Assembly (NCBI GenBank): GCA_029953675.1
Contig: JAMWBK010000008.1
Location: 558,001-622,000 of the forward strand
DNA length: 64,000 nt
From: Rhodosorus marinus CCMP1338
Lineage: Eukaryota > Plantae > Rhodophyta
Direction of reading: 5' to 3'
In this document: positions 3,001 through 47,231 of the stretch, one piece after another
How the letters are laid out: each line of letters starts with the position of its first letter
Position numbering within the stretch: position 1 is the first letter of the stretch
Translations under genes and position numbers: made by a program
The notes under the pieces: generated by a model
The model's database searches: none
Told to the model about the DNA's origin: nothing
What the model saw: only the letters and a program-made list of their open reading frames with translations

Positions 3001-4855
3001 AGTCGGTGGTAAACGATGACGGTGAGAGACTGCGAGAGGTAAATACCAAGCACTGGGCGCGGTTTGGAAGGGGCAACGGGTCTGAATTCACATCATCCTT
3101 GAAGCTTTTGCCGTCCTGCGATTAATGGTTCCATGTACGTTCGTACAATGCTAGTCAGTCAGCTGGAGGTCCGCTTGCGAGCAGCCCTCCTCACGCAGTA
3201 CAGGTGCTGATTTTACTCAGCTCGCGGGAGGGGGGTACCGTTAGGATGGTGGGACAAAAGAATTTCGTCGTTGAATCGCTAGCATCCGCGGCATTCTGGC
3301 CACGTCTTAGTAAGTTGGAGACTCAACGTCAACAGATAAGGAGAATGCGGCAAAGCGTACATCGGGGCTTTCCTTTCATCCCTACAAGAGAACTATAAAT
3401 CGATGCCACTCATTGAGTGAGGATACCCGGTTCCAGTCCGAAATTCTCATGCTTAGCATCTAAAAACTGAGAACGTTCACAAAGCGATGCGATGACCTCA
3501 GGCTCGTTGCCGTCTGCCGTCCAGCCCCATGCCGTTCGCTGTTTGCGCAGCAGTCCAGCAGTCATGCGATCCACACGTTTGCCCTTCAAACCCCAACAAA
3601 ATCTGAGTATGACATTCAAGAAGGGGAAGCTCCAAACCCCCTTTTTCCCTCCAAACCCATGCCGGTGGCTCTCAACCACTGTTGTTCCCAGATATCTTGG
3701 TCTCCAATACGACAATGACATACCACGTACTAACGTAACTCGCTTAAATGCCAAGAGGATCCGAGTCCGAGTTCCACCGGTTGTTTTGGCGACTGTCACC
3801 CCTCCAGAACCTCCTTTTTTTCCTGAACAACTGACACAATCTATATGGGGATCCTCAGGGTGATGAGCTCTTGCCCGCTCGCAACGCTATTCTAGCATCT
3901 TGAGCCCACATGTCGCAGATCCGCACCAGTGATGAAGTGAATTTGAACAATTTTCCAACCATCTGGACGGACAATCTGTAGCAATAAATATATTCGAAAC
4001 AAGGCTCCGATGAATGGAGCGGCCGCCGACACACAGACTGAATCTTTTATTGCAAGAAACGATTTCCTCACGACCTTTTAATTCTTGTACATCGTCCATG
4101 TGCCGCTCCCTCTGATTCTCCTTCGAGGTAGGTCCCCGCTGCCGTTTAGCCTCCCCGAGCGGGTTTTAGTTCTCCAGCATTGTTGAGGTTTTAGAGGGGG
4201 GATTATGCAGGCTATTTTCAGGCCCTTGAAAGAGCGGTTGAACCAACGCTGAAGGTCTCAGGCGGGTTTCGAAGTTTTTTTTTGGTTTAGCGCAGATATC
4301 AGGACTTCCGTGATCGGAGACGTCAAAAATCCCTTAAGGAGTGAATGAACTGCTCCTTCAGCCACTTGATATGGAATAGGAGGTTGATCCCAGACAAATT
4401 TCATCGTCCTTTGGGAATCACGTTCGTAATGTCCGCTGTTTCTAGTTCCATCCGCAGCAATCGCCCACAACCTATTTGTGGTTGAGTCTCCGAATCGGGA
4501 ACCTGGTTGAATCTCGAGTGCATAGTTCATCATCCTAATGCGTTTTTTCAGAGCCTGTCTATTCTGCGGAGCGTAAAAGGAGGCGCTGGTGGATCATTCG
4601 TCGCGTGTAATTCGAGCTTTCCTATCTTAGTTTGGATCTGAAGCTGCCCTCCCGACTGTGGGTGTTGTAGCCAGGACAAATTTCAGTTCGAGCAAATTAG
4701 ATGCCTTCACCGGCCAGCGGTGTACTGCCCGGGGTTTCCTCTCTAATGCATTCGGAAAAACTATCTAGTGGACTATCCCCAATCGTGAATCCATTTCGAC
4801 TGTCTATACCCATCCTCAATGTCAGGCTTGCTCAGGCTCCAAAGATAAATTGACC

Positions 4856-4954: not shown

Positions 4955-7332
4955 CCGCCTGACAGGATTGTCCATCTGTTCGTGCGACGACTCTGGTGGG
5001 TAGCATGCTAGTCTCTCCCTCCCGATGCGGCCATATCCCTGTTGCTTTCGGATTTCTCTATCAGGGACTAACAAAACCCATCCCAACCCCACTGATTAAT
5101 GGGCAGCCGTGTCAGCTCAAGCCGTCTAATAACAGCGGTTGTTGGTGATTTCGCGTTGTGCTTCCATACTGGATCTTCCAACAACCAGCGAGGTCTATTG
5201 GTGTGTACGAAAGCCCTCAACCTGCATGGCTAGACTGTTCCTGCTGCGAAAGAAGAACACCTTCGTCCCGACATCAGCACCCCCCGACACTAACCCCGAA
5301 CTCGAAAGGGCGGGCGAGAAACAGAATAGAACTGGGCTCCGTGCAACCAAGCCCAGGATCTCTCTAAAAAAAGCGACTGCGTTCTCCTCGGGAAACCCTT
5401 TTGGGGGCCTCGCAAGACCCCCCTGCGTGCCTCCTGGGGAGAATCCCTTTTACTTTTTCATTAAATTTTGTTTCAGCTCAAATCGCTGTCAGACCACATC
5501 CCAAAATTAGTCGCTTGGCGATTGATATTTTTAGCAGCTTTGCCCTCTCGAAGATTAATATTTTCATTTATTTTTAGTTCCCGAGGCGAGCGATTAAAGT
5601 CGAAGGGATTACTTTATACTAAAATACATGTCAACCGTATTTCATATTATTAATAATTATCACTCGTTTTGCGTCTGTTCATTTTTGGAGGATAGCAGGA
5701 CACCCTGCTTAACCATATCCTGATATGGTTAGTTTAAGAAAAGAGCTTGGTTTCTGAGCAATGGATAGTTTGACATTATGGCCATTGACAAGAAGTTTTC
5801 TCCGCCCCTCTCCCCCCCCGCCTCCCCCGGCTTCTCAAGGCAAATGGACATTTCTAAAATCGACTGAGGGAGAACAGCTCTAATTCAAAATAGAAAGAAA
5901 ATGGGAGGGACGTACTGAAATTAGTCGAAAACGAATTCATTGCGGTGACCAACCAACAGGCGCCTTCCTACACTCACCTGCATGGTGTGTCTCTTTCTGT
6001 CATCAGCCCGAGCTTGTTCCCAGGTTTGTCCGCGTCTTTTTCCAAAACCTGGAGGTTTTATGAATGTGCTGTTTTCTTTCTTCTAGGAGAAAATCGGTTA
6101 GTTGTTTGGAACCTCTGTTACTATAGAACCCTTCCCAAGTGGTGCGAAGAGGAGGATTCTGTGGAACCCACAAGCAACCACCTTCGTTTCAGGAAAATTG
6201 ACTCAATTTCTTTTGGTCCTTTTACTATTTGGCTTTCATAGACTATGAGAAAAGGAGGGTTTCGTTCCGCGCTCATGAAAACCTTGTCGTCTTATAAATC
6301 TTGCTCCAATTTTGTCGTCCATTTCCGACCATGCAGGTTCTGCGCTTTCAGCGCAAGAAATCCCGAAAAACAAAGAGTTGAAGTTTTAAAAAGGAAGGAT
6401 AAACTTGATTTGAATAACCAGTGGTTGAACATTTTGATAGTATATATATGTTAAAATATACTACATTTTAATCCACTTATATAGACAAGATAATTTTATC
6501 CCCCCCCACGCAAATAGAGAATGGTCTCATCTAGTTTAACCGAAGGCCCAATAGCTCACTAAAAAAAAGAAGAAAACTCTTCGCGAACTTGTTTTCACAC
6601 GCCGTACCGTTTTTCAATATTTTTTTCGTGCTTTCCTGCGGGCGAGAAAATTGTGATAAACTTTTGGAAGACTTGTATAGATTTTAAAACAATTCATAAG
6701 CCACTCTCTAAAATAAACATAAACAATATCAACCTCAAAATTTCTATTTAAAATATTTTTAAAATAAATAACAGCCGAAAATTCGTTCAAACGTGGCGGA
6801 AGCATTTCTTTCACATGTTTCGGACAAAAGAGAATTTTCTACCTTTATTGCATTATTATTAGTATTTTTGATTGTTATAAGAAAAAATACATTTTATGGC
6901 CAAAAAGAAACGGAAAAATTATGGGTGTCGTTTTCATAACTTTTTGGGGGGTGTGGGGGGGGCTGTTTGGAGTGGTTTTCCGGCAGTCAGCCCTTTCTCC
7001 CCCTTTTTTTTTCTTTTTTTCCTTTTTTTCTTTTTTTCCTTTTTTTGTTCATTAGAATAATTTTACGAATTATTGTTTTTTAATAATTTTGCGCTAGGTG
7101 TTGATTGTGTTAGGGACTCTGGATTTTATGTTTTTTTGGAACTGGACGTGGGGGGAGTTTTGGTTGTGGGTGGGCCCAGTATATAAGCATGGGATACGAG
7201 CAGAGCGTTCAGCGGGAAAGCGTTATCGGGAACAGGGAGCCGGTATGAGTTTGGAGACAGACGAGTAAGAGAATTTAGCTGTATAGCTGTTTCGATTTGG
7301 AAGAAATAGTTTACGAAGTTTTTTTTTTTGGC

Positions 7333-38206: not shown

Positions 38207-39857
38207 ATGTCGTCATCAACGGAAGTTACGAAGGAGAGTGTAGCGGGGGCTGAGGAGGAGAAAGAGGTTGAGGAGAGTGAAAGTAAGGTTGAGAATGGGG
38301 ATGCCGGGGGTGGTGAGGATCCCGAGGTGAATGCGATAACTGAAGGAGTTGAACAGACTGATGTGGATTGGGCAGAAGAGGACGAGGATGAGGAGGTGGA
38401 GGAGGAGGAGGAGGAAGTGACGGGTATTGATAAGGGTGATCGGACTGCGGAGGTTCAAGTCCTTCAGTCCAATCCGAATACACCTTATTATTCAGCTACG
38501 ACATTTGAAGAACTGGGACTTTCTCCTGAACTCATGAAGGGCTTGTACGCAATGAAGTTTAACAAGCCGTCGAAGATTCAGGCGACGTCCCTCCCGATGA
38601 TCTTCGGAAAGGAGAGACAGAATCTCATCGGGCAGGCTCACAACGGATCCGGAAAAACCGCATGCTTTGTCCTAGGAATGTTGAATCAAGTCGATTTCTC
38701 AAACCCAGCACCCCAAGCACTCTGCGTTGTGCCCACTCGAGAGCTCGCCAGGCAAATCCATGACGTGATTATGGCCATAGGAAAATTCACTCAAGTCAAA
38801 GTCTATGAGGCGGTTTCTCTTCCAGAGGAAGAACGTGTTCATGTAGGTTCTGCCCGCACTTCAAGCTGAAAAGGATGCAGCCGTTTGCACGGAAATCTGT
38901 TTGGCAGTTTCTTAGCCTTGGTGTTTCTGTGTATTTTTTAGAGTGTTAAGATAGACGCTCACATAGTCGTTGGAACACCTGGACGGGTGAAAGCGTGCGT
39001 TAGCCGGAGGGAGCTTAACACGCGTGCTATCAAAGTTTTCGTTTTGGACGAGGCCGATCAGATGGTTGACGAGCACAACTTTGGAGAGGACACGGTAAGA
39101 ATCAAAAAATCGCTACCGAGGGATGTCCAAACGCTGCTTTTCTCGGCGACCTACGATGACGTCGTGCGAGCCCTCGCGAAGAGAGTCGCGCCGGACGCGA
39201 ATATGATCACCGTCAAGCGAGAACAGCTCTCCCTCGACAGCATAAAGCAGTACTTCTTCAGATGTCAGAACGCCGACGCCAGATTCGACGTGCTCTCCGA
39301 GATCTACGCAAGCTTGTCACTTGGACAGTCTGTTATCTTCGTTCGAAAGAAGGATACAGCCAAGAGCCTTGCCGCTCAACTTCGAGCGGATGGCCATACC
39401 GTCTCCCTCCTCTATGGGAACCCAATGACCCCCGACGAGCGTGACCGAGTAGTCGATGAATTTCGTGCTGGTACAACCAAGGTACTTTTACAAAATCTAT
39501 CTACTTCTCCTCGAAAGCTGTCTTTCTTAAGAATCATTTCCTCAATCAACTCTGCTTCCTGTCCAACAGGTTCTGCTCACCACCAACCTACTCGCCCGCG
39601 GAGTTGATATCCCTCAGGTTACTGTTGTCATCAACTACGATATGCCTACTGACAAGTTTGACCAGGAACCGGAGTTTGATACATACATGCATCGAATCGG
39701 TCGTACTGGAAGGTTTGGTAGAAAAGGTATTGCGATCAACTTTGTGTACAATAGCTTCTCTTTTCGAATACTGAAGGAGATAGAGACCTTCTACAAGCAT
39801 ACCATTGAGGAGGTTAAGGACGTTGAGGATTTGGAGGAGAAGATCAAGAATATTTAG
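38207..39857 (+). CDS. DBP5: DEAD-box RNA helicase DBP5/DDX19 (mRNA export); exons 38207-38842, 38942-39481, 39570-39857
   Basis: Q motif [69 protein letters not shown]. Confidence 0.95.
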
Positions 39858-42835: not shown

Positions 42836-43615
42836 ATGAAGTTCCTCGAACACAGTGGACTTGCCGACTTGGAAATGAAGTTGTCCGGCCTCGAGGTTGG
42901 AGACTTCGTTTTGGACTCGAAGTTTGAAGCTTACTCTTGTAGGTTGCCGCAATTCCTTCGACAAGCTTCTCTCCCTTGGGAAGATTTGATGCTGAACTCC
43001 CAAAATCCTTTTGATTTTGCAGGCAAGCTTGCGTTGGGTGACAAAGAACTCTCCAAAAGCTTGGACCGCCGGTTCAACGAGGAGATGGAACGGTCTCAGA
43101 GGTCGCCGCAGTACCTTAGTTTGTCTCCCGTCGGCCCTTTAACGGACTCAACCTCGAGGAGAACATTATTAAATTTGATATGCACCCTGAACGCTGCATA
43201 TCCGGACTACGACTTCAGTACTTTGACCTTGGACTGTCTCACGCGAGAAAAAAGCGTGGAGAGCGTAGTGAGAAGAATTGACTCAAACCTTGAACAGGTG
43301 TACAAGTGCCTCGGTCAGTCTCTTCGAACAGCCCTGTGGACGGCCATTGACGAAGTGATCGCTCCGAATGACTGCGAAATATACAGTTATGTCTCTGACA
43401 ACGAGGAGACTCCATTCGATATGGAGTTTGAAGTGTGGTCCACGCACTTGTTTTTCTATAACAAGCGTCAGAAGAAGGTCTTGTTGATGTCGCTCTCGGC
43501 ATACAATCGTTTTGCTCTGGAGACGATTGAAGAAGAAGAAGTCGACGACATGGAGTTCGAGATGGACGGCATGGACGACACCGTCGGGTCCAGAACGCCA
43601 GCATTGGCTTACTGA
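42836..43615 (+). CDS. MAF1: MAF1, repressor of RNA polymerase III; 84-nt in-frame intron 42939-43022
   Basis: MKFLE, EAYSCK after splicing, GPLTDSTSRRTLLNLICTLNAAYPDYDFS, LWTAIDEVI, CEIYSY, VWSTHLFFYNKRQKKVL, and an acidic tail. Confidence 0.96.
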   Translation: MKFLEHSGLADLEMKLSGLEVGDFVLDSKFEAYSCRLPQFLRQASLPWEDLMLNSQNPFDFAGKLALGDKELSKSLDRRFNEEMERSQRSPQYLSLSPVGPLTDSTSRRTLLNLICTLNAAYPDYDFSTLTLDCLTREKSVESVVRRIDSNLEQVYKCLGQSLRTALWTAIDEVIAPNDCEIYSYVSDNEETPFDMEFEVWSTHLFFYNKRQKKVLLMSLSAYNRFALETIEEEEVDDMEFEMDGMDDTVGSRTPALAY

Positions 43616-43703
43616 GGGGCTTGGCGTAACCCCCGCGTACCGAGCATAGATCTCGGAAGTTGCAAGCTGCGAAACAAAATTTGCTTCGCACGATGGCAAT
43701 ACC

Positions 43704-43780
43704 AGCGAACGGGCTTTTCTGGTGAAGGCGTAGAGTTTTTAGCTCTGACGGATAAGCGGGTTCGATTCCCGGCGTTTGCT
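43704..43780 (+). tRNA. Non-canonical tRNA-Lys(UUU)-like cloverleaf (tRNA pseudogene or tRNA-like ncRNA)
   Basis: Acceptor (A)GCGAACG/CGTTTGC(T); D-arm GCTT/AGGC with loop TTCTGGTGA; anticodon arm TAGAG-TT[TTT]AG-CTCTG; T-arm with perfect B-box GGTTCGATTCC; TTTT at 43780-43783. Deviations: no U8, G.G mismatch at the base of the T-stem, 8-nt variable loop. Confidence 0.62.
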
Positions 43781-46484
43781 TTTCAATAATACTGTCCAAA
43801 CATCTCGGCTGTGTAGTGTCTTGATCTTTGGGTGTCCCTATAAATAAAACAAAAAATCTTCGACGTGAGAAATGGATTGAAGGCATTAGTCTCTTCGTGC
43901 TCGCATGATTGTCCCAGTCGATCCCAGCAGTTGGCAACGTCCAATTTCACTTGCACCACTCCGTCCCTTCCCCAGCAGAGTCATCTCAGATATGAAGCTG
44001 AGGCAAACATGGACCATTTTTCCACCGAAGATAGTGACCCGAGTCCAAAACCAAGCCCTTGTAGTGCGTAGCGCTTGAAACCAACTGCCGATCCGGTGGC
44101 ACGCTTTTCACCTTAGGACTAGTCCGTGCGTTGGACCCGCTTGAGCACGTGTATACTCAGCAGTCGGGTTGCCCGAAAGCGGGGACAATGAGGCATTTAA
44201 CCCTCCCCAATTTTTTGACACTCACTTGAACTTGCAGTACTGTGCCAACGCGAGCTTCAGAATGTGACAGGGGTCCAGTACCTGACTTGGAACGGTCCAA
44301 ACTAGAATACCCATCCGTGGCTACCACATGGCAGCCGTCAGAAAATCAACCGGCACATCCTCCAAGCGCTCAGTCGAACGTTCGCTGGTAAAACCAGAGT
44401 GTAGCCAGTCCTCACCACGACATTTTGCACTCGTCAGTCACCGACAATCATCTTCAGAAAAAAAAGAAAAAAGGAAGATCTACTCCTCATCTCCAAGGCG
44501 ACACGATCCCGCTCTCAAACACAACCACAGGCAGCCAGCAATGACACATCACTCCTATACCGGACATCTGCCGACTAGATAACGACCGACTCAAAACTCA
44601 ACCCAAACTAACCACCTTCACAAATCAGTCAAAACCTTCGCTATCCATCGAAATTTCTCTGATCAACGGGAAAATCCTTGCGGATCAACAATATCCACAT
44701 TGAACGTTTCCCATAGGTACATCTCTCCGACCCTCCTACCCCTTCCCCAACTTAACCATCTATCAAAAGCCTATTTATACATCGACCCCAGAAAGAGTTT
44801 CCTGTTCACCCGGCCGTCAGCCGCCCGCACAGTACGGAGCGTTGAAATTATATCAAAGTTTCACATCCACGAACAAAAAAAGCTAAGCGAAAGTTATCGC
44901 AACCAAAGAAATGGGACAGTTTTGTCGGAAGCTACCAGTGGGAGTCAAATATTCATAAAATGAAAACTTTGTGAAGGCCAGTTTTCAAGTGGCCAATATT
45001 TTCGCTCCAAAAGGAAGGGGTAAGGGATTTGTCCCAAGAATTTTCGCCAACATGGGACAAGAAAATTGAAATAGATGTGAAAGTTCAATGATCAATAACG
45101 GGGATTCTTCCCTGTATGCCAAGGTTAGAAAAGGTTGCCGATACAGAAGAGACCCTTCCTCACGAAGGAGATCAGAGATATTCATCATGATATAATCCGA
45201 GACAACAACCCTGAAGGGAAGAAAGCTAGGCTAGAGAGACAGAACCGGGCTCCAAAAACTAACACGGCATCATAACGCCACAGGATAAAACTAAACGAAG
45301 AGAGGGAAACGCGAGTGATTCTCATCGCGATCGCAAAAACAGTCCCGAAACCATACCGCCCCCGGAGCTCTCAACTAAGCCGAAGACCTCGACGATCGAA
45401 TAAGGTCTGCGGAACAGGGCGGTCTGACACGCCGGATTTCAGGGTGGTCCATTCGTGGTACACAAACTCCTTGTGGCGCCGTAAGATTCGAGCATCTTCA
45501 CCATTCACAACGCACTCGAGTGAAAGACAACAAACAACGCGAAGCAAGAGGGCAGGGAAGAGTCAGATCAAGATCAGTTTTACAAAGACCGGCCACGTCC
45601 TGACGCAAGATCAGCAAGTCTTCCGGGGAACCAGAAGGGACTTCGAATAAAGTTCCGGATTTCAGAATCATCAGTATGGTGGTCGATGAGGCGAGGCACT
45701 GGGAGCCGCTGCTCCGTGGCAATCTCTGCACCCTGAGGTGGGCCTCAACGGGTGATATAGAAGACGATTGATTGGGGATGGTGGCGCGTTCTGGCACCTT
45801 TCACTGCCAGACAACTCGCGAGCTGGTGAGCTCCATGGTTGCCGAGGGTTTGCCCGGAACAAAACTTTGCAGTGACCATACTCAGGACCAGACCAAAGCG
45901 ACAGGTCGACCCCAAGTACAGACGGAAGCATGTGCGCAACTCAAAGTCGGCGAGGTCTAACACTTGATGAGCCGGGGTGCTCGTCAGCCATAGAGTGCTC
46001 AAAACGTTCCTCGAGCTCCGCAGCCGCCACGTCTGGTCGTTACGAGATGGCTCCAAGGAGGAAAAAAGCACGGCGTTGATGTCCCTGATCTCATTTTGGG
46101 CAAGGTATTCTTCTATGTTGGCGGACGTATCGTCACCAGTTTATGCGAAAAAATTCAACCAATTCCATCAACCGAAGAGGTATCTGAACGCTCCTCACTT
46201 CTTTAAGTAAGACCTACGAAGCTTTTTGTTGCCAACTGGGGTTTTGTATCATTGATGGGATTATTATTAATTTTTTTTGTGTAACGGCAGTGAATTTTGT
46301 CTTGTTTTGAGTTAAGTTTTAGCCGATTTTTGGTTGTGAATATGAAGTTTAGATGATGAGGGTTTGAGGTTGGGATACGGACTAGGGTTGGACGGGAGTG
46401 TGGATCCGAGAGAGTAAAGAAGAAGAGTTCGAGTATCTTTCAATGCGTGTCTGGCTTCTGAGTATAGCAGACTAAATTGAAATA

Positions 46485-47231
46485 ATGGCGTTTGCTCTCT
46501 CCAATGGAGTGGTTCGAGTGAGGAGCGGAGCGCGGGTTTGTAGAGGGCATGGAGATGCTTCCCAGTTAGCGCCACGTCCGGTTTTGAGGAGCGCCGACCT
46601 CACCCGAATGGGTGCGGAGGAGAGCGAGGGATTCCAGGGTTATCCAGAAGTTGATCCTGTGGTATCCCCTGCTCCGCCGGCTGATGTCGCAGCGGTGACT
46701 CCGGAGCAGTATGCCAACGGCCGAGCTTTGAGCAGGTTGGGATGGTTGGCGTGGTGGTTGGAACTTCCACTCTCGATGACCACCGCGGCTATTATTGCGT
46801 TTGCTCTTGTTACGAAAGGTAGCGCCGTGAGCGCTGCGGTGAGTGCAGGTCTCGTTTTTGCAGTCGCTGCTGTGGTTACGTGTTTGATTTCCATCATTGT
46901 TGCGTGGGCCTATGCAGCTATGGGCAGAAGGATAATGGCGGGCAAGAAGAGCTTCCCCGCTTCGAGATTAATTTGGTTTGGCTTGTTCCTTGCCTTCATC
47001 GGTATCATACTTTCTCTTTTAGGCGTTCAGATTATTGTCGGCACCACCCTTGGGAAGGCCCTCTCAAGTGGTTTATCCTCCTCAAACGTTGTTCAATCGG
47101 TATCGGCCGTAACTGCTATCGATCTTCTGGTCATCCAAGGTTGCGTTAATGCTCTGATGTCGCAATTTATTGCCATGACTATCGCAATGAACCTCTACAC
47201 TCGATTCCATAAAGCGATTGCAACAGACTGA
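46485..47231 (+). CDS. TIC21: TIC21/PIC1-like (DUF3611) plastid inner-envelope membrane protein, intronless
   Basis: MAF-type transit peptide and 4 hydrophobic segments with RLGWLAWWLEL, LLGVQIIVGTTLGKAL and AIDLLVIQGCVNALMSQF, matching the DUF3611 pattern. Confidence 0.83.
   Translation: MAFALSNGVVRVRSGARVCRGHGDASQLAPRPVLRSADLTRMGAEESEGFQGYPEVDPVVSPAPPADVAAVTPEQYANGRALSRLGWLAWWLELPLSMTTAAIIAFALVTKGSAVSAAVSAGLVFAVAAVVTCLISIIVAWAYAAMGRRIMAGKKSFPASRLIWFGLFLAFIGIILSLLGVQIIVGTTLGKALSSGLSSSNVVQSVSAVTAIDLLVIQGCVNALMSQFIAMTIAMNLYTRFHKAIATD

Follow-up and report, generated by a model that had tools for sequence, protein, structure and literature searches.

The 64,000-nucleotide (nt) stretch analysed here, referred to below as the window, is part of contig JAMWBK010000008.1 of Rhodosorus marinus CCMP1338, and its sequence places it in the genome of Rhodosorus, a red alga of the Stylonematophyceae. 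It carries a gene for MAF1, the conserved master repressor of tRNA synthesis, whose known control is post-translational and depends on TOR (target of rapamycin)-dependent phosphorylation; a short way past the stop codon, on the same strand, lies a tRNA-like cloverleaf, which is the subject of this analysis. The open reading frame (ORF) at 42836-43615 (+) is MAF1 by its Pfam Maf1 match (E=3.2e-45), and, 28 in-frame residues aside, its product shares 98% identity with the MAF1 known from transcripts of Rhodosorus marinus. These residues, absent from the protein of the spliced transcript (P0001), correspond to an 84-nt GT..AG intron (42939-43022) that is in frame and free of stop codons, and the unspliced gene reads as a single ORF of 259 amino acids. 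The coding sequence comprises 42836-42938 (exon 1, from the ATG to codon 35, with its boundary taken from the sequence and from BLAST against the transcript L124) and 43023-43615 (exon 2, ending in the stop TGA at 43613-43615). Intron-retaining MAF1 isoforms occur in the transcriptomes of both Rhodosorus (P0123) and Bangiopsis (P0004/L002), and the position of the intron, after EAYSC, is common to Rhodosorus, land plants and the green alga Coccomyxa.

The cloverleaf occupies 43704-43783 (+), 88 nt 3' of the MAF1 stop codon, and both the sequence and ARAGORN bear out the four arms described in the initial annotation, together with every detail listed there: the lack of U8, a weak A-box, the option of an 8-bp acceptor, a mismatch in the T stem, a perfect B-box and a TTTT run. 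ARAGORN reports exactly one tRNA-like gene in the window, tRNA-Lys(ttt) at 43704-43781 (+), and assigns the same label to the element of a second Rhodosorus strain. Sixty dinucleotide-preserving shuffles of the window yielded one call in total, and since this amounts to ~0.02 per window, the cloverleaf is unlikely to be a chance fold. At the gathering thresholds of Rfam, no family reaches its threshold for the element in a search of the whole window. The best score within the tRNA clan, obtained in E-value mode, is that of selenocysteine tRNA (tRNA-Sec; 28.8 bits with E=0.0011, the threshold being 47), with RF00005 lower. The initial annotation had counted a missing covariance-model hit against the element; by the curated Rfam thresholds the hit is formally missing, which shows only that it is no standard tRNA.

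All parts of the element lie on the forward strand. An 88-nt leader (43616-43703), ~90% identical between the two Rhodosorus strains, runs from the stop codon to the acceptor stem, whose 5' strand GCGAACG (43705-43711) forms 7 bp with the 3' strand CGTTTGC (43773-43779; read from the sequence and from folds), with an optional eighth A-U pair between A43704 and T43780. The D-like arm (43715-43728) has a 5-bp stem, TTTTC/GAAGG, closed by the 4-nt loop TGGT. The central, anticodon-like hairpin (43731-43747) has a 7-bp stem and a UUU loop in its minimum-free-energy fold, and may alternatively be read as 5 bp with a 7-nt loop containing UUU. An unpaired linker, ACGGATAAG (43748-43756), replaces the variable loop and measures 8-9 nt, compared with 6 nt in other lineages. 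The T arm (43757-43771) consists of the 4-bp stem CGGG/CCCG and the loop TTCGATT (UUCGAUU in the RNA), with a fifth stem pair mismatched (G.G), and contains the B-box GGTTCGATTCC (43759-43769), read from the sequence. The T-run TTTT (43780-43783) abuts the acceptor stem, and ~60 nt past the element stands a candidate poly(A) signal, AATAAA (43843-43848), kept in both Rhodosorus strains, the role of which is presumed. No stabilising structure or leader-trailer pairing was found 5' of the element, the leader hairpins being no more stable than shuffles, and reading of the sequence revealed no A-rich tract or triple-helix-like element adjoining it.

The window protein groups in one clade with the four nearest MAF1 proteins of the database, whose contigs were compared. 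They are a Logan assembly of SRR22824290 from a relative (L001), an intron-retaining and a spliced transcript of Bangiopsis sp. CCMP1999 (L002 and L125; MMETSP1475), and a spliced MAF1 transcript of the second Rhodosorus strain (L124). A homologous element is present in each of them downstream of the MAF1 stop codon and on the same strand, at a distance of 83 nt in L001, 200 nt in Bangiopsis (L002/L125) and 88 nt in L124, and it is the sole non-coding stretch that BLAST aligned between genera; the MAF1 proteins of the lineages carrying it are 57-67% identical. A T-run directly follows the acceptor stem in every case, with six residues in L001 (TTTTTT), eight in Bangiopsis (TTTTTTTT) and four in the second Rhodosorus strain. 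A covariance model (R1) built from the three distinct red-algal sequences scores these sequences at 86-98 bits. For all three, the best Rfam family is tRNA-Sec (28.8, 22.5 and 20.8 bits), which aligns best because of their long D stem, 4-nt D-loop and 4-bp T stem. ARAGORN makes no tRNA call on the L001 and Bangiopsis elements. Neither ARAGORN nor R1 run without filters found the element at the MAF1 loci of Galdieria (L128/L129), Porphyridium purpureum (L132), two further red-algal relatives (L123, L133) or the green alga Coccomyxa (L130); R1 gave no match with an E-value below 0.2 at these loci, the best reaching 12.8 bits, and none was on the sense strand downstream of MAF1. Among the sampled red algae, the element is confined to the stylonematophycean clade. 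Directly upstream of it, the hexamer AATACC occurs in both the window (43697-43702) and L001 (3007-3012), and ATTACC is found nine nt farther upstream in Bangiopsis, a shared setting that may provide a processing or initiation context. The end of the Bangiopsis contig (L002 1815-1971) is a tandem repeat of ~20 nt (CTCTTGACCTCTCTTGGCCT).

Folded separately, the three sequences all adopt one four-arm structure, made up of a 7-bp acceptor, a D-like arm whose 5-bp stem closes a 4-nt YGGU/AGGU loop, a central hairpin, and a T arm with a TTCRANT loop. The element combines a four-arm cloverleaf with a T-loop of the TTCRANY type and GG in the D-loop. The core of the D-like arm, GGTGAAGGCGT, and the stem of the T arm are invariant in the three lineages, and 95% of acceptor cells are paired. 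A single mismatched layer between the T stem and the acceptor yields a tRNA-like stack of 12 layers (7 bp, mismatch, 4 bp). Standard pairs occupy 94% of the pair cells across the three sequences, compared with 41-52% for slid partners. The most informative arm is the central hairpin, whose length is 17 nt (Rhodosorus), 18 nt (L001) or 20 nt (Bangiopsis), with stems of 7-10 bp and loops of 3 nt (Rhodosorus), 4 nt (L001) and 4-6 nt (Bangiopsis). Pairing is complete in the 21 cells of its 7-bp core, and in three of the pairs both sides differ between the lineages (G-C/U-A/U.G, U.G/A-U/A-U and U-A/C-G/C-G). These compensatory changes were read by hand from the independent folds rather than counted by a tool, and MAFFT applied to the central hairpin alone mis-registers the 3' strand of Rhodosorus. 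Covariation in the element is best regarded as supportive rather than proven. The nucleotides at 43712, just past the 5' acceptor strand, and at 43772, unpaired between the T stem and the 3' acceptor strand (columns 9 and 71 of alignment A3), are the same letter within each lineage (G/G, A/A, U/U), a match that may be due to chance among three sequences only.

A 5-bp stem with a 7-nt anticodon-type loop can be drawn for Rhodosorus alone and not for the hairpins of L001 and Bangiopsis. The Lys UUU anticodon proposed in the initial annotation is thus a feature of one genus and best discarded, as loop size and sequence vary among the orthologues, and because they are not conserved the RNA is no decoder. 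The possibility that the locus nonetheless encodes a functional, if structurally odd, tRNA-Lys(UUU), such as one brought into the tRNA-poor mitochondria of stylonematophycean algae, is very improbable. The Lys(ttt) call of ARAGORN in both Rhodosorus strains would fit such a tRNA, as would the small number of tRNAs on the mitochondrial minicircles of Stylonematophyceae (PMC10250338). Against it stand the orthologous 18- and 20-nt hairpins, which lack a symmetric stem with a 7-nt loop, share no anticodon and draw no ARAGORN call, as well as scores under all Rfam thresholds, the absence of U8 and A14, the 4-bp T stem and the 4-nt D-loop. An intron-containing or permuted tRNA gene was also considered and set aside, given that the element already has the length of a mature tRNA (73-75 nt from acceptor to acceptor) and leaves no room for an intron. 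For annotation, the ARAGORN label tRNA-Lys(UUU) at this locus should be read as a warning, since it denotes no decoding tRNA.

To assess selection on the element, the window was aligned with the second Rhodosorus strain over the region that follows the MAF1 stop codon. Identity across this 3' region is 75% overall, yet the element is 100% identical between the strains within diverged flanks. The longest perfect block, 43691-43789 (+), spans 99 nt and comprises the element with 13 nt upstream and 6 nt downstream. Identity is 80-90% up to the AATAAA at 43843-43848 and then falls to 47-75%, which suggests that the functional 3' untranslated region (UTR) of MAF1 ends at this signal. There are two further perfect runs, one of 30 nt in the 3' UTR leader (43649-43678) and one of 26 nt (44357-44382) in otherwise diverged sequence ~570 nt downstream of the element.

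The spliced MAF1 contigs of Rhodosorus (L124) and Bangiopsis (L125) include the element and extend 600-1000 nt further, colinear with the genome. Their MMETSP libraries were presumably poly(A)-selected and unstranded. The contigs suggest co-transcription in at least some molecules, without placing the poly(A) site. A MAF1 poly(A) site upstream of 43704 had been named at the outset as evidence against the element, but the contigs of two genera join the coding region to it, suggesting that some MAF1 transcripts end downstream of this position. The part of L124 at 1250-2138 corresponds to 43860-44710 of the window, continues ~900 nt past the candidate AATAAA and has no recognisable ORF; this extension could reflect a long 3' UTR, read-through, or the merging of a non-coding transcript.

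It is scarcely credible that the cloverleaf came to lie beside MAF1 by chance, whether as a tRNA pseudogene in decay or as a repeat of tRNA origin. Several departures from the tRNA consensus and the unremarkable folding energy of the window copy would be expected of such a relic. However, position, strand and fold have been conserved while the MAF1 proteins diverged to 57-67% identity, and the 99-nt block is perfect between strains. A search of the 64-kb window with R1, filters off, found no second copy; this and the conserved linkage to MAF1 favour the element over the dispersed repeat that the initial annotation had entertained. Its further suggestion of an inert pseudogene was rejected, as the fold and the MAF1 linkage are kept in three stylonematophycean lineages and the strains are 100% identical across the element. 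Comparison of the sequences indicates instead that the element is a selected, non-decoding tRNA mimic, transcribed in sense within the MAF1 unit of stylonematophycean red algae, and a probability of about 0.85 is given here to its being functional, conserved and linked to MAF1.

A tRNA-like element associated with MAF1 has previously been described in land plants. The MAF1 introns of angiosperms contain a conserved hairpin, the 'MAF1 motif', with the element CPIR-1 ~10 nt downstream of it (PMC12218528); the 2014 description of CPIR-1 presents it as a putative non-coding RNA of tRNA-like form with no function assigned, according to the account of that work in PMC12218528 (Akkuratov et al. 2014, Gene 548:81). 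The plant element was located here in Nymphaea (L126 4158-4241, with no T-run), in Selaginella (L127 3611-3689, with seven T after it) and in Marchantia polymorpha (L131), which has three identical copies (3905-3983, 4089-4167 and 5089-5167), each with the same flanks and TTTT. The Marchantia copies lie within one 2.4-kb intron and look like a recent local triplication. In all three plants, the element is on the sense strand in the same MAF1 intron, between residues about 95 and 96. Its cloverleaf has a 6-bp D stem and a central hairpin, both with loops of 3-5 nt, in addition to an extra hairpin and a T stem of 5 bp. Rfam misses these elements, reporting nothing tRNA-like at E<=1 across the plant and Galdieria loci, and only a partial match to a plastid motif on the reverse strand flagged the plant one.

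The red-algal element and CPIR-1 resemble each other in their MAF1 host, sense strand and placement within a transcription unit of RNA polymerase II (Pol II), and likewise in their cloverleaf, canonical T-loop, long D stem with a tiny loop and non-decoding central hairpin; CPIR-1, too, is often followed by a T-run (Selaginella, Marchantia). They differ in that CPIR-1 is intronic and interrupts the PDYDF region, whereas red-algal MAF1 has no intron there and bears the element after the stop codon. Unlike the red-algal element, CPIR-1 also possesses a hairpin that recalls the variable arm of class II tRNAs, its T stem has 5 bp, and its stem sequences are different. A covariance model of the plant elements (R2) gives 21-25 bits on the red-algal elements, with no match in L001, and R1 gives 13 bits on Marchantia. 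For comparison, ordinary tRNAs taken from unrelated loci reach 20-44 bits with R2 and 20-36 bits with R1. These controls came from loci of a metagenome scan with the pattern GGTGAAGGCGN{19,31}GGGTTCRANTCCC, which proved too loose; checked with ARAGORN, these loci were, among the matches listed, largely tRNA arrays, apparently of phage or bacterial origin, several having no tRNA call. Because the cross-scores are no better than those of ordinary tRNAs, homology between the red-algal element and CPIR-1 is not demonstrable. Red-algal and land-plant MAF1 probably recruited a tRNA mimic independently, which is the simpler account because both position (intron versus 3' UTR) and architecture differ. 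It is less likely that the two elements derive from one ancestral element of Archaeplastida that moved between intron and 3' UTR.

A regulatory function is expected mainly because the same gene, encoding the repressor of tRNA transcription, has captured a sense-strand mimic twice. The mimic probably links MAF1 expression to the machinery that makes tRNA. The parts that are kept, namely the stack of acceptor and T arm, the canonical T-loop and the GG in a small D-loop, are those recognised by ribonuclease (RNase) P, RNase Z and the CCA-adding enzyme, whereas the anticodon region, with no conserved loop, can vary freely, as it does in mascRNA. On this pattern of conservation, the favoured though tentative explanation, held at somewhat under even odds, is that the element serves as a feedback sensor by way of RNase P/Z cleavage. 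The two enzymes would cleave the MAF1 transcript where the mimic lies, upstream of the poly(A) signal, and the cut would part the coding region from its tail and lower MAF1 output. With RNA polymerase III (Pol III) highly active, abundant pre-tRNAs would compete for RNase P/Z, leaving more MAF1 mRNA intact and yielding more repressor, with homeostatic negative feedback on tRNA synthesis as the net outcome. CPIR-1 of land plants could follow the same logic, with cleavage competing with splicing.

Several observations weigh against this explanation. The strongest is the T-run abutting the acceptor stem, present in three of three red-algal lineages and two of three plants, which would have no role in RNase P/Z processing and suggests Pol III termination. 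Contigs that run through the element imply that uncut molecules exist, and, the assemblies being unstranded, these contigs could also merge overlapping transcripts. The absence of the element at the MAF1 loci of Galdieria, Porphyridium and two relatives means that it is no general need of MAF1 control. Formal covariation is weak with three sequences, as one pair changes on both sides in the model-fitted alignment and 20 of 500 shuffles attain the percentage of pairing that was observed. The window copy also has a folding energy no better than that of shuffles (z -0.45 to -0.65).

The T-run also belongs to the chief alternative, in which a nested Pol III unit or TFIIIC site, a tRNA-type gene with a B-box and T-run, lies in sense inside the Pol II unit of MAF1. 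Pol III or TFIIIC occupancy, itself under MAF1 control, would then alter the elongation or 3'-end formation of MAF1, or else a small RNA would report Pol III activity at the locus of the repressor itself. The B-box consensus, GGTTCGANTCC, is matched perfectly in Rhodosorus (GGTTCGATTCC) and L001 (GGTTCGACTCC) and nearly so in Bangiopsis (GGTTCAAATCC), and at least four T follow the acceptor directly in all three red-algal lineages (4, 6 and 8), as well as in Selaginella (7 T) and Marchantia (4 T), though Nymphaea has no T-run. The other internal promoter motif of such genes is the A-box, with the consensus TRGCNNAGTGG at about +8 to +19. Here only the GG at 18-19 is kept, T8 and A14 being absent in three of three lineages and G10/C11 in two of three. 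There is no A-rich leader for the U-run to pair with, unlike in MALAT1 (PMC8457004), which also favours this alternative, and a cis-acting Pol III element at a gene for the Pol III machinery has a precedent in ETC6 of the yeast TFC6 promoter, as summarised in PMC4228148 (Kleinschmidt et al. 2011). Nevertheless, a TFIIIC site acting as DNA alone would need neither compensatory changes in the central stem nor complementarity in the acceptor, the element is present in contigs of Pol II-type transcripts, and the feedback expected from simple interference would be positive, not homeostatic. The poor A-box also counts against such a unit. A nested Pol III unit is a serious rival, if a rather unlikely one. 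Both this explanation and that of an RNase P/Z mimic in the MAF1 mRNA had been raised in the initial annotation; conservation supports the two alike and leaves them viable, and sequence alone cannot separate them.

That the element instead yields a small RNA that leaves the MAF1 transcript and acts in trans, for instance by binding a tRNA-binding protein, with MAF1 serving as host gene in the manner of snoRNAs (small nucleolar RNAs) or mascRNA and the linkage reflecting co-expression, is improbable. The conserved fold and the co-transcription are compatible with such an RNA, the authors of PMC12218528 left this possibility open for the plant MAF1 elements, and mascRNA is reported to have functions of its own. 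Such an RNA would, however, leave it unexplained why MAF1 is the host in two lineages with unrelated-looking elements. Moreover, the variable central loop offers no conserved recognition surface, and no target is known.

With respect to the favoured RNase P/Z sensor, a broader form of the proposal is that a tRNA mimic entered the MAF1 transcript independently in red algae and in land plants and that this transcript competes with pre-tRNAs for RNase P/Z or for other factors that handle tRNA, which would constitute an undescribed post-transcriptional homeostat of tRNA synthesis. This broader claim is speculative and, on balance, doubtful; if it were true, the cell would gauge its pre-tRNA load through the fate of MAF1 mRNA. 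Two distant lineages carry a selected tRNA-shaped element in the MAF1 transcript, at different positions and with no detectable shared sequence, and this two-lineage pattern speaks for a selective advantage of coupling MAF1 RNA to the tRNA machinery. Whether MAF1 expression senses pre-tRNA load or Pol III activity directly becomes a testable question, and the orphan CPIR-1 of plants gains a comparative partner and a working hypothesis.

Elsewhere in the window, two neighbouring ORFs with DEAD-box helicase domains (DEAD, Helicase_C) at 38207-39607 are probably exons of one split gene, and the ORF at 46485-47231 encodes a DUF3611 protein. No recognisable gene was found between 43900 and 46400. 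Antisense ORFs across the element (43239-43937 on the minus strand, and others) have no Pfam match and were treated as spurious. At other MAF1 loci, a class I aminoacyl-tRNA synthetase (PF00579; L127 4523-6490) lies 115 nt downstream of MAF1 in Selaginella, and a dyskerin/TruB pseudouridine synthase (L132 1236-2597) is encoded divergently upstream of it in Porphyridium; these tRNA- or RNA-related neighbours are probably a coincidence.

Among known systems, the canonical tRNA (RF00005) is set apart from the red-algal element by its curated score and by a 5-bp stem with a conserved 7-nt loop and shared anticodon, which the element does not attain. The extended D stem, 4-nt YGGU loop and 4-bp T stem are shared with tRNA-Sec (RF01852), from which the element nonetheless differs in its score (20.8-28.8 bits versus 47), in having no UCA and no long variable arm (its linker being 6-9 nt), and in stacking as 7+4 rather than 9/4. 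The closest parallel in vertebrates is provided by mascRNA/MALAT1 and MEN-beta, which likewise have a reduced anticodon arm, a location in the 3' region of a Pol II transcript and a U-rich trailer; in MALAT1, RNase P generates the 3' end by cleaving at the tRNA-like mascRNA (PMC8457004). The red-algal element has what marks a mascRNA-type RNA, a tRNA-like fold with no functional anticodon loop, and is contained in spliced MAF1 contigs. The host is nevertheless a protein-coding mRNA, in contrast to the nuclear long non-coding RNA MALAT1. MALAT1 also has an upstream A-rich tract and a triple helix (ENE, the expression and nuclear retention element), whereas the red-algal element has neither of these and no leader-trailer pairing. 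Unlike mascRNA/MALAT1, the element is followed by a candidate AATAAA, and its processing is predicted only.

ETC6 in the yeast TFC6 promoter resembles the red-algal element as a cis-acting Pol III promoter element at a gene of the Pol III machinery, and is autoregulatory according to the summary in PMC4228148. ETC sites are B-box DNA in promoters and require no RNA fold, whereas in the red-algal element the whole cloverleaf is conserved, at the 3' end of the gene. In the thrS operator of E. coli and in the tRNA-like structures of plant mRNAs, an mRNA comes under the control of tRNA-handling proteins through a tRNA-shaped segment of its own. Mimicry of the thrS type represents the same concept as that proposed for the red-algal element, and differs in organism, in position (the 5' leader) and in partner (a synthetase), with no sequence relationship between the two. 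A tRNA-like element embedded in MAF1 is of a kind already described in land plants (PMC12218528), and the red-algal form is a new variant of it.

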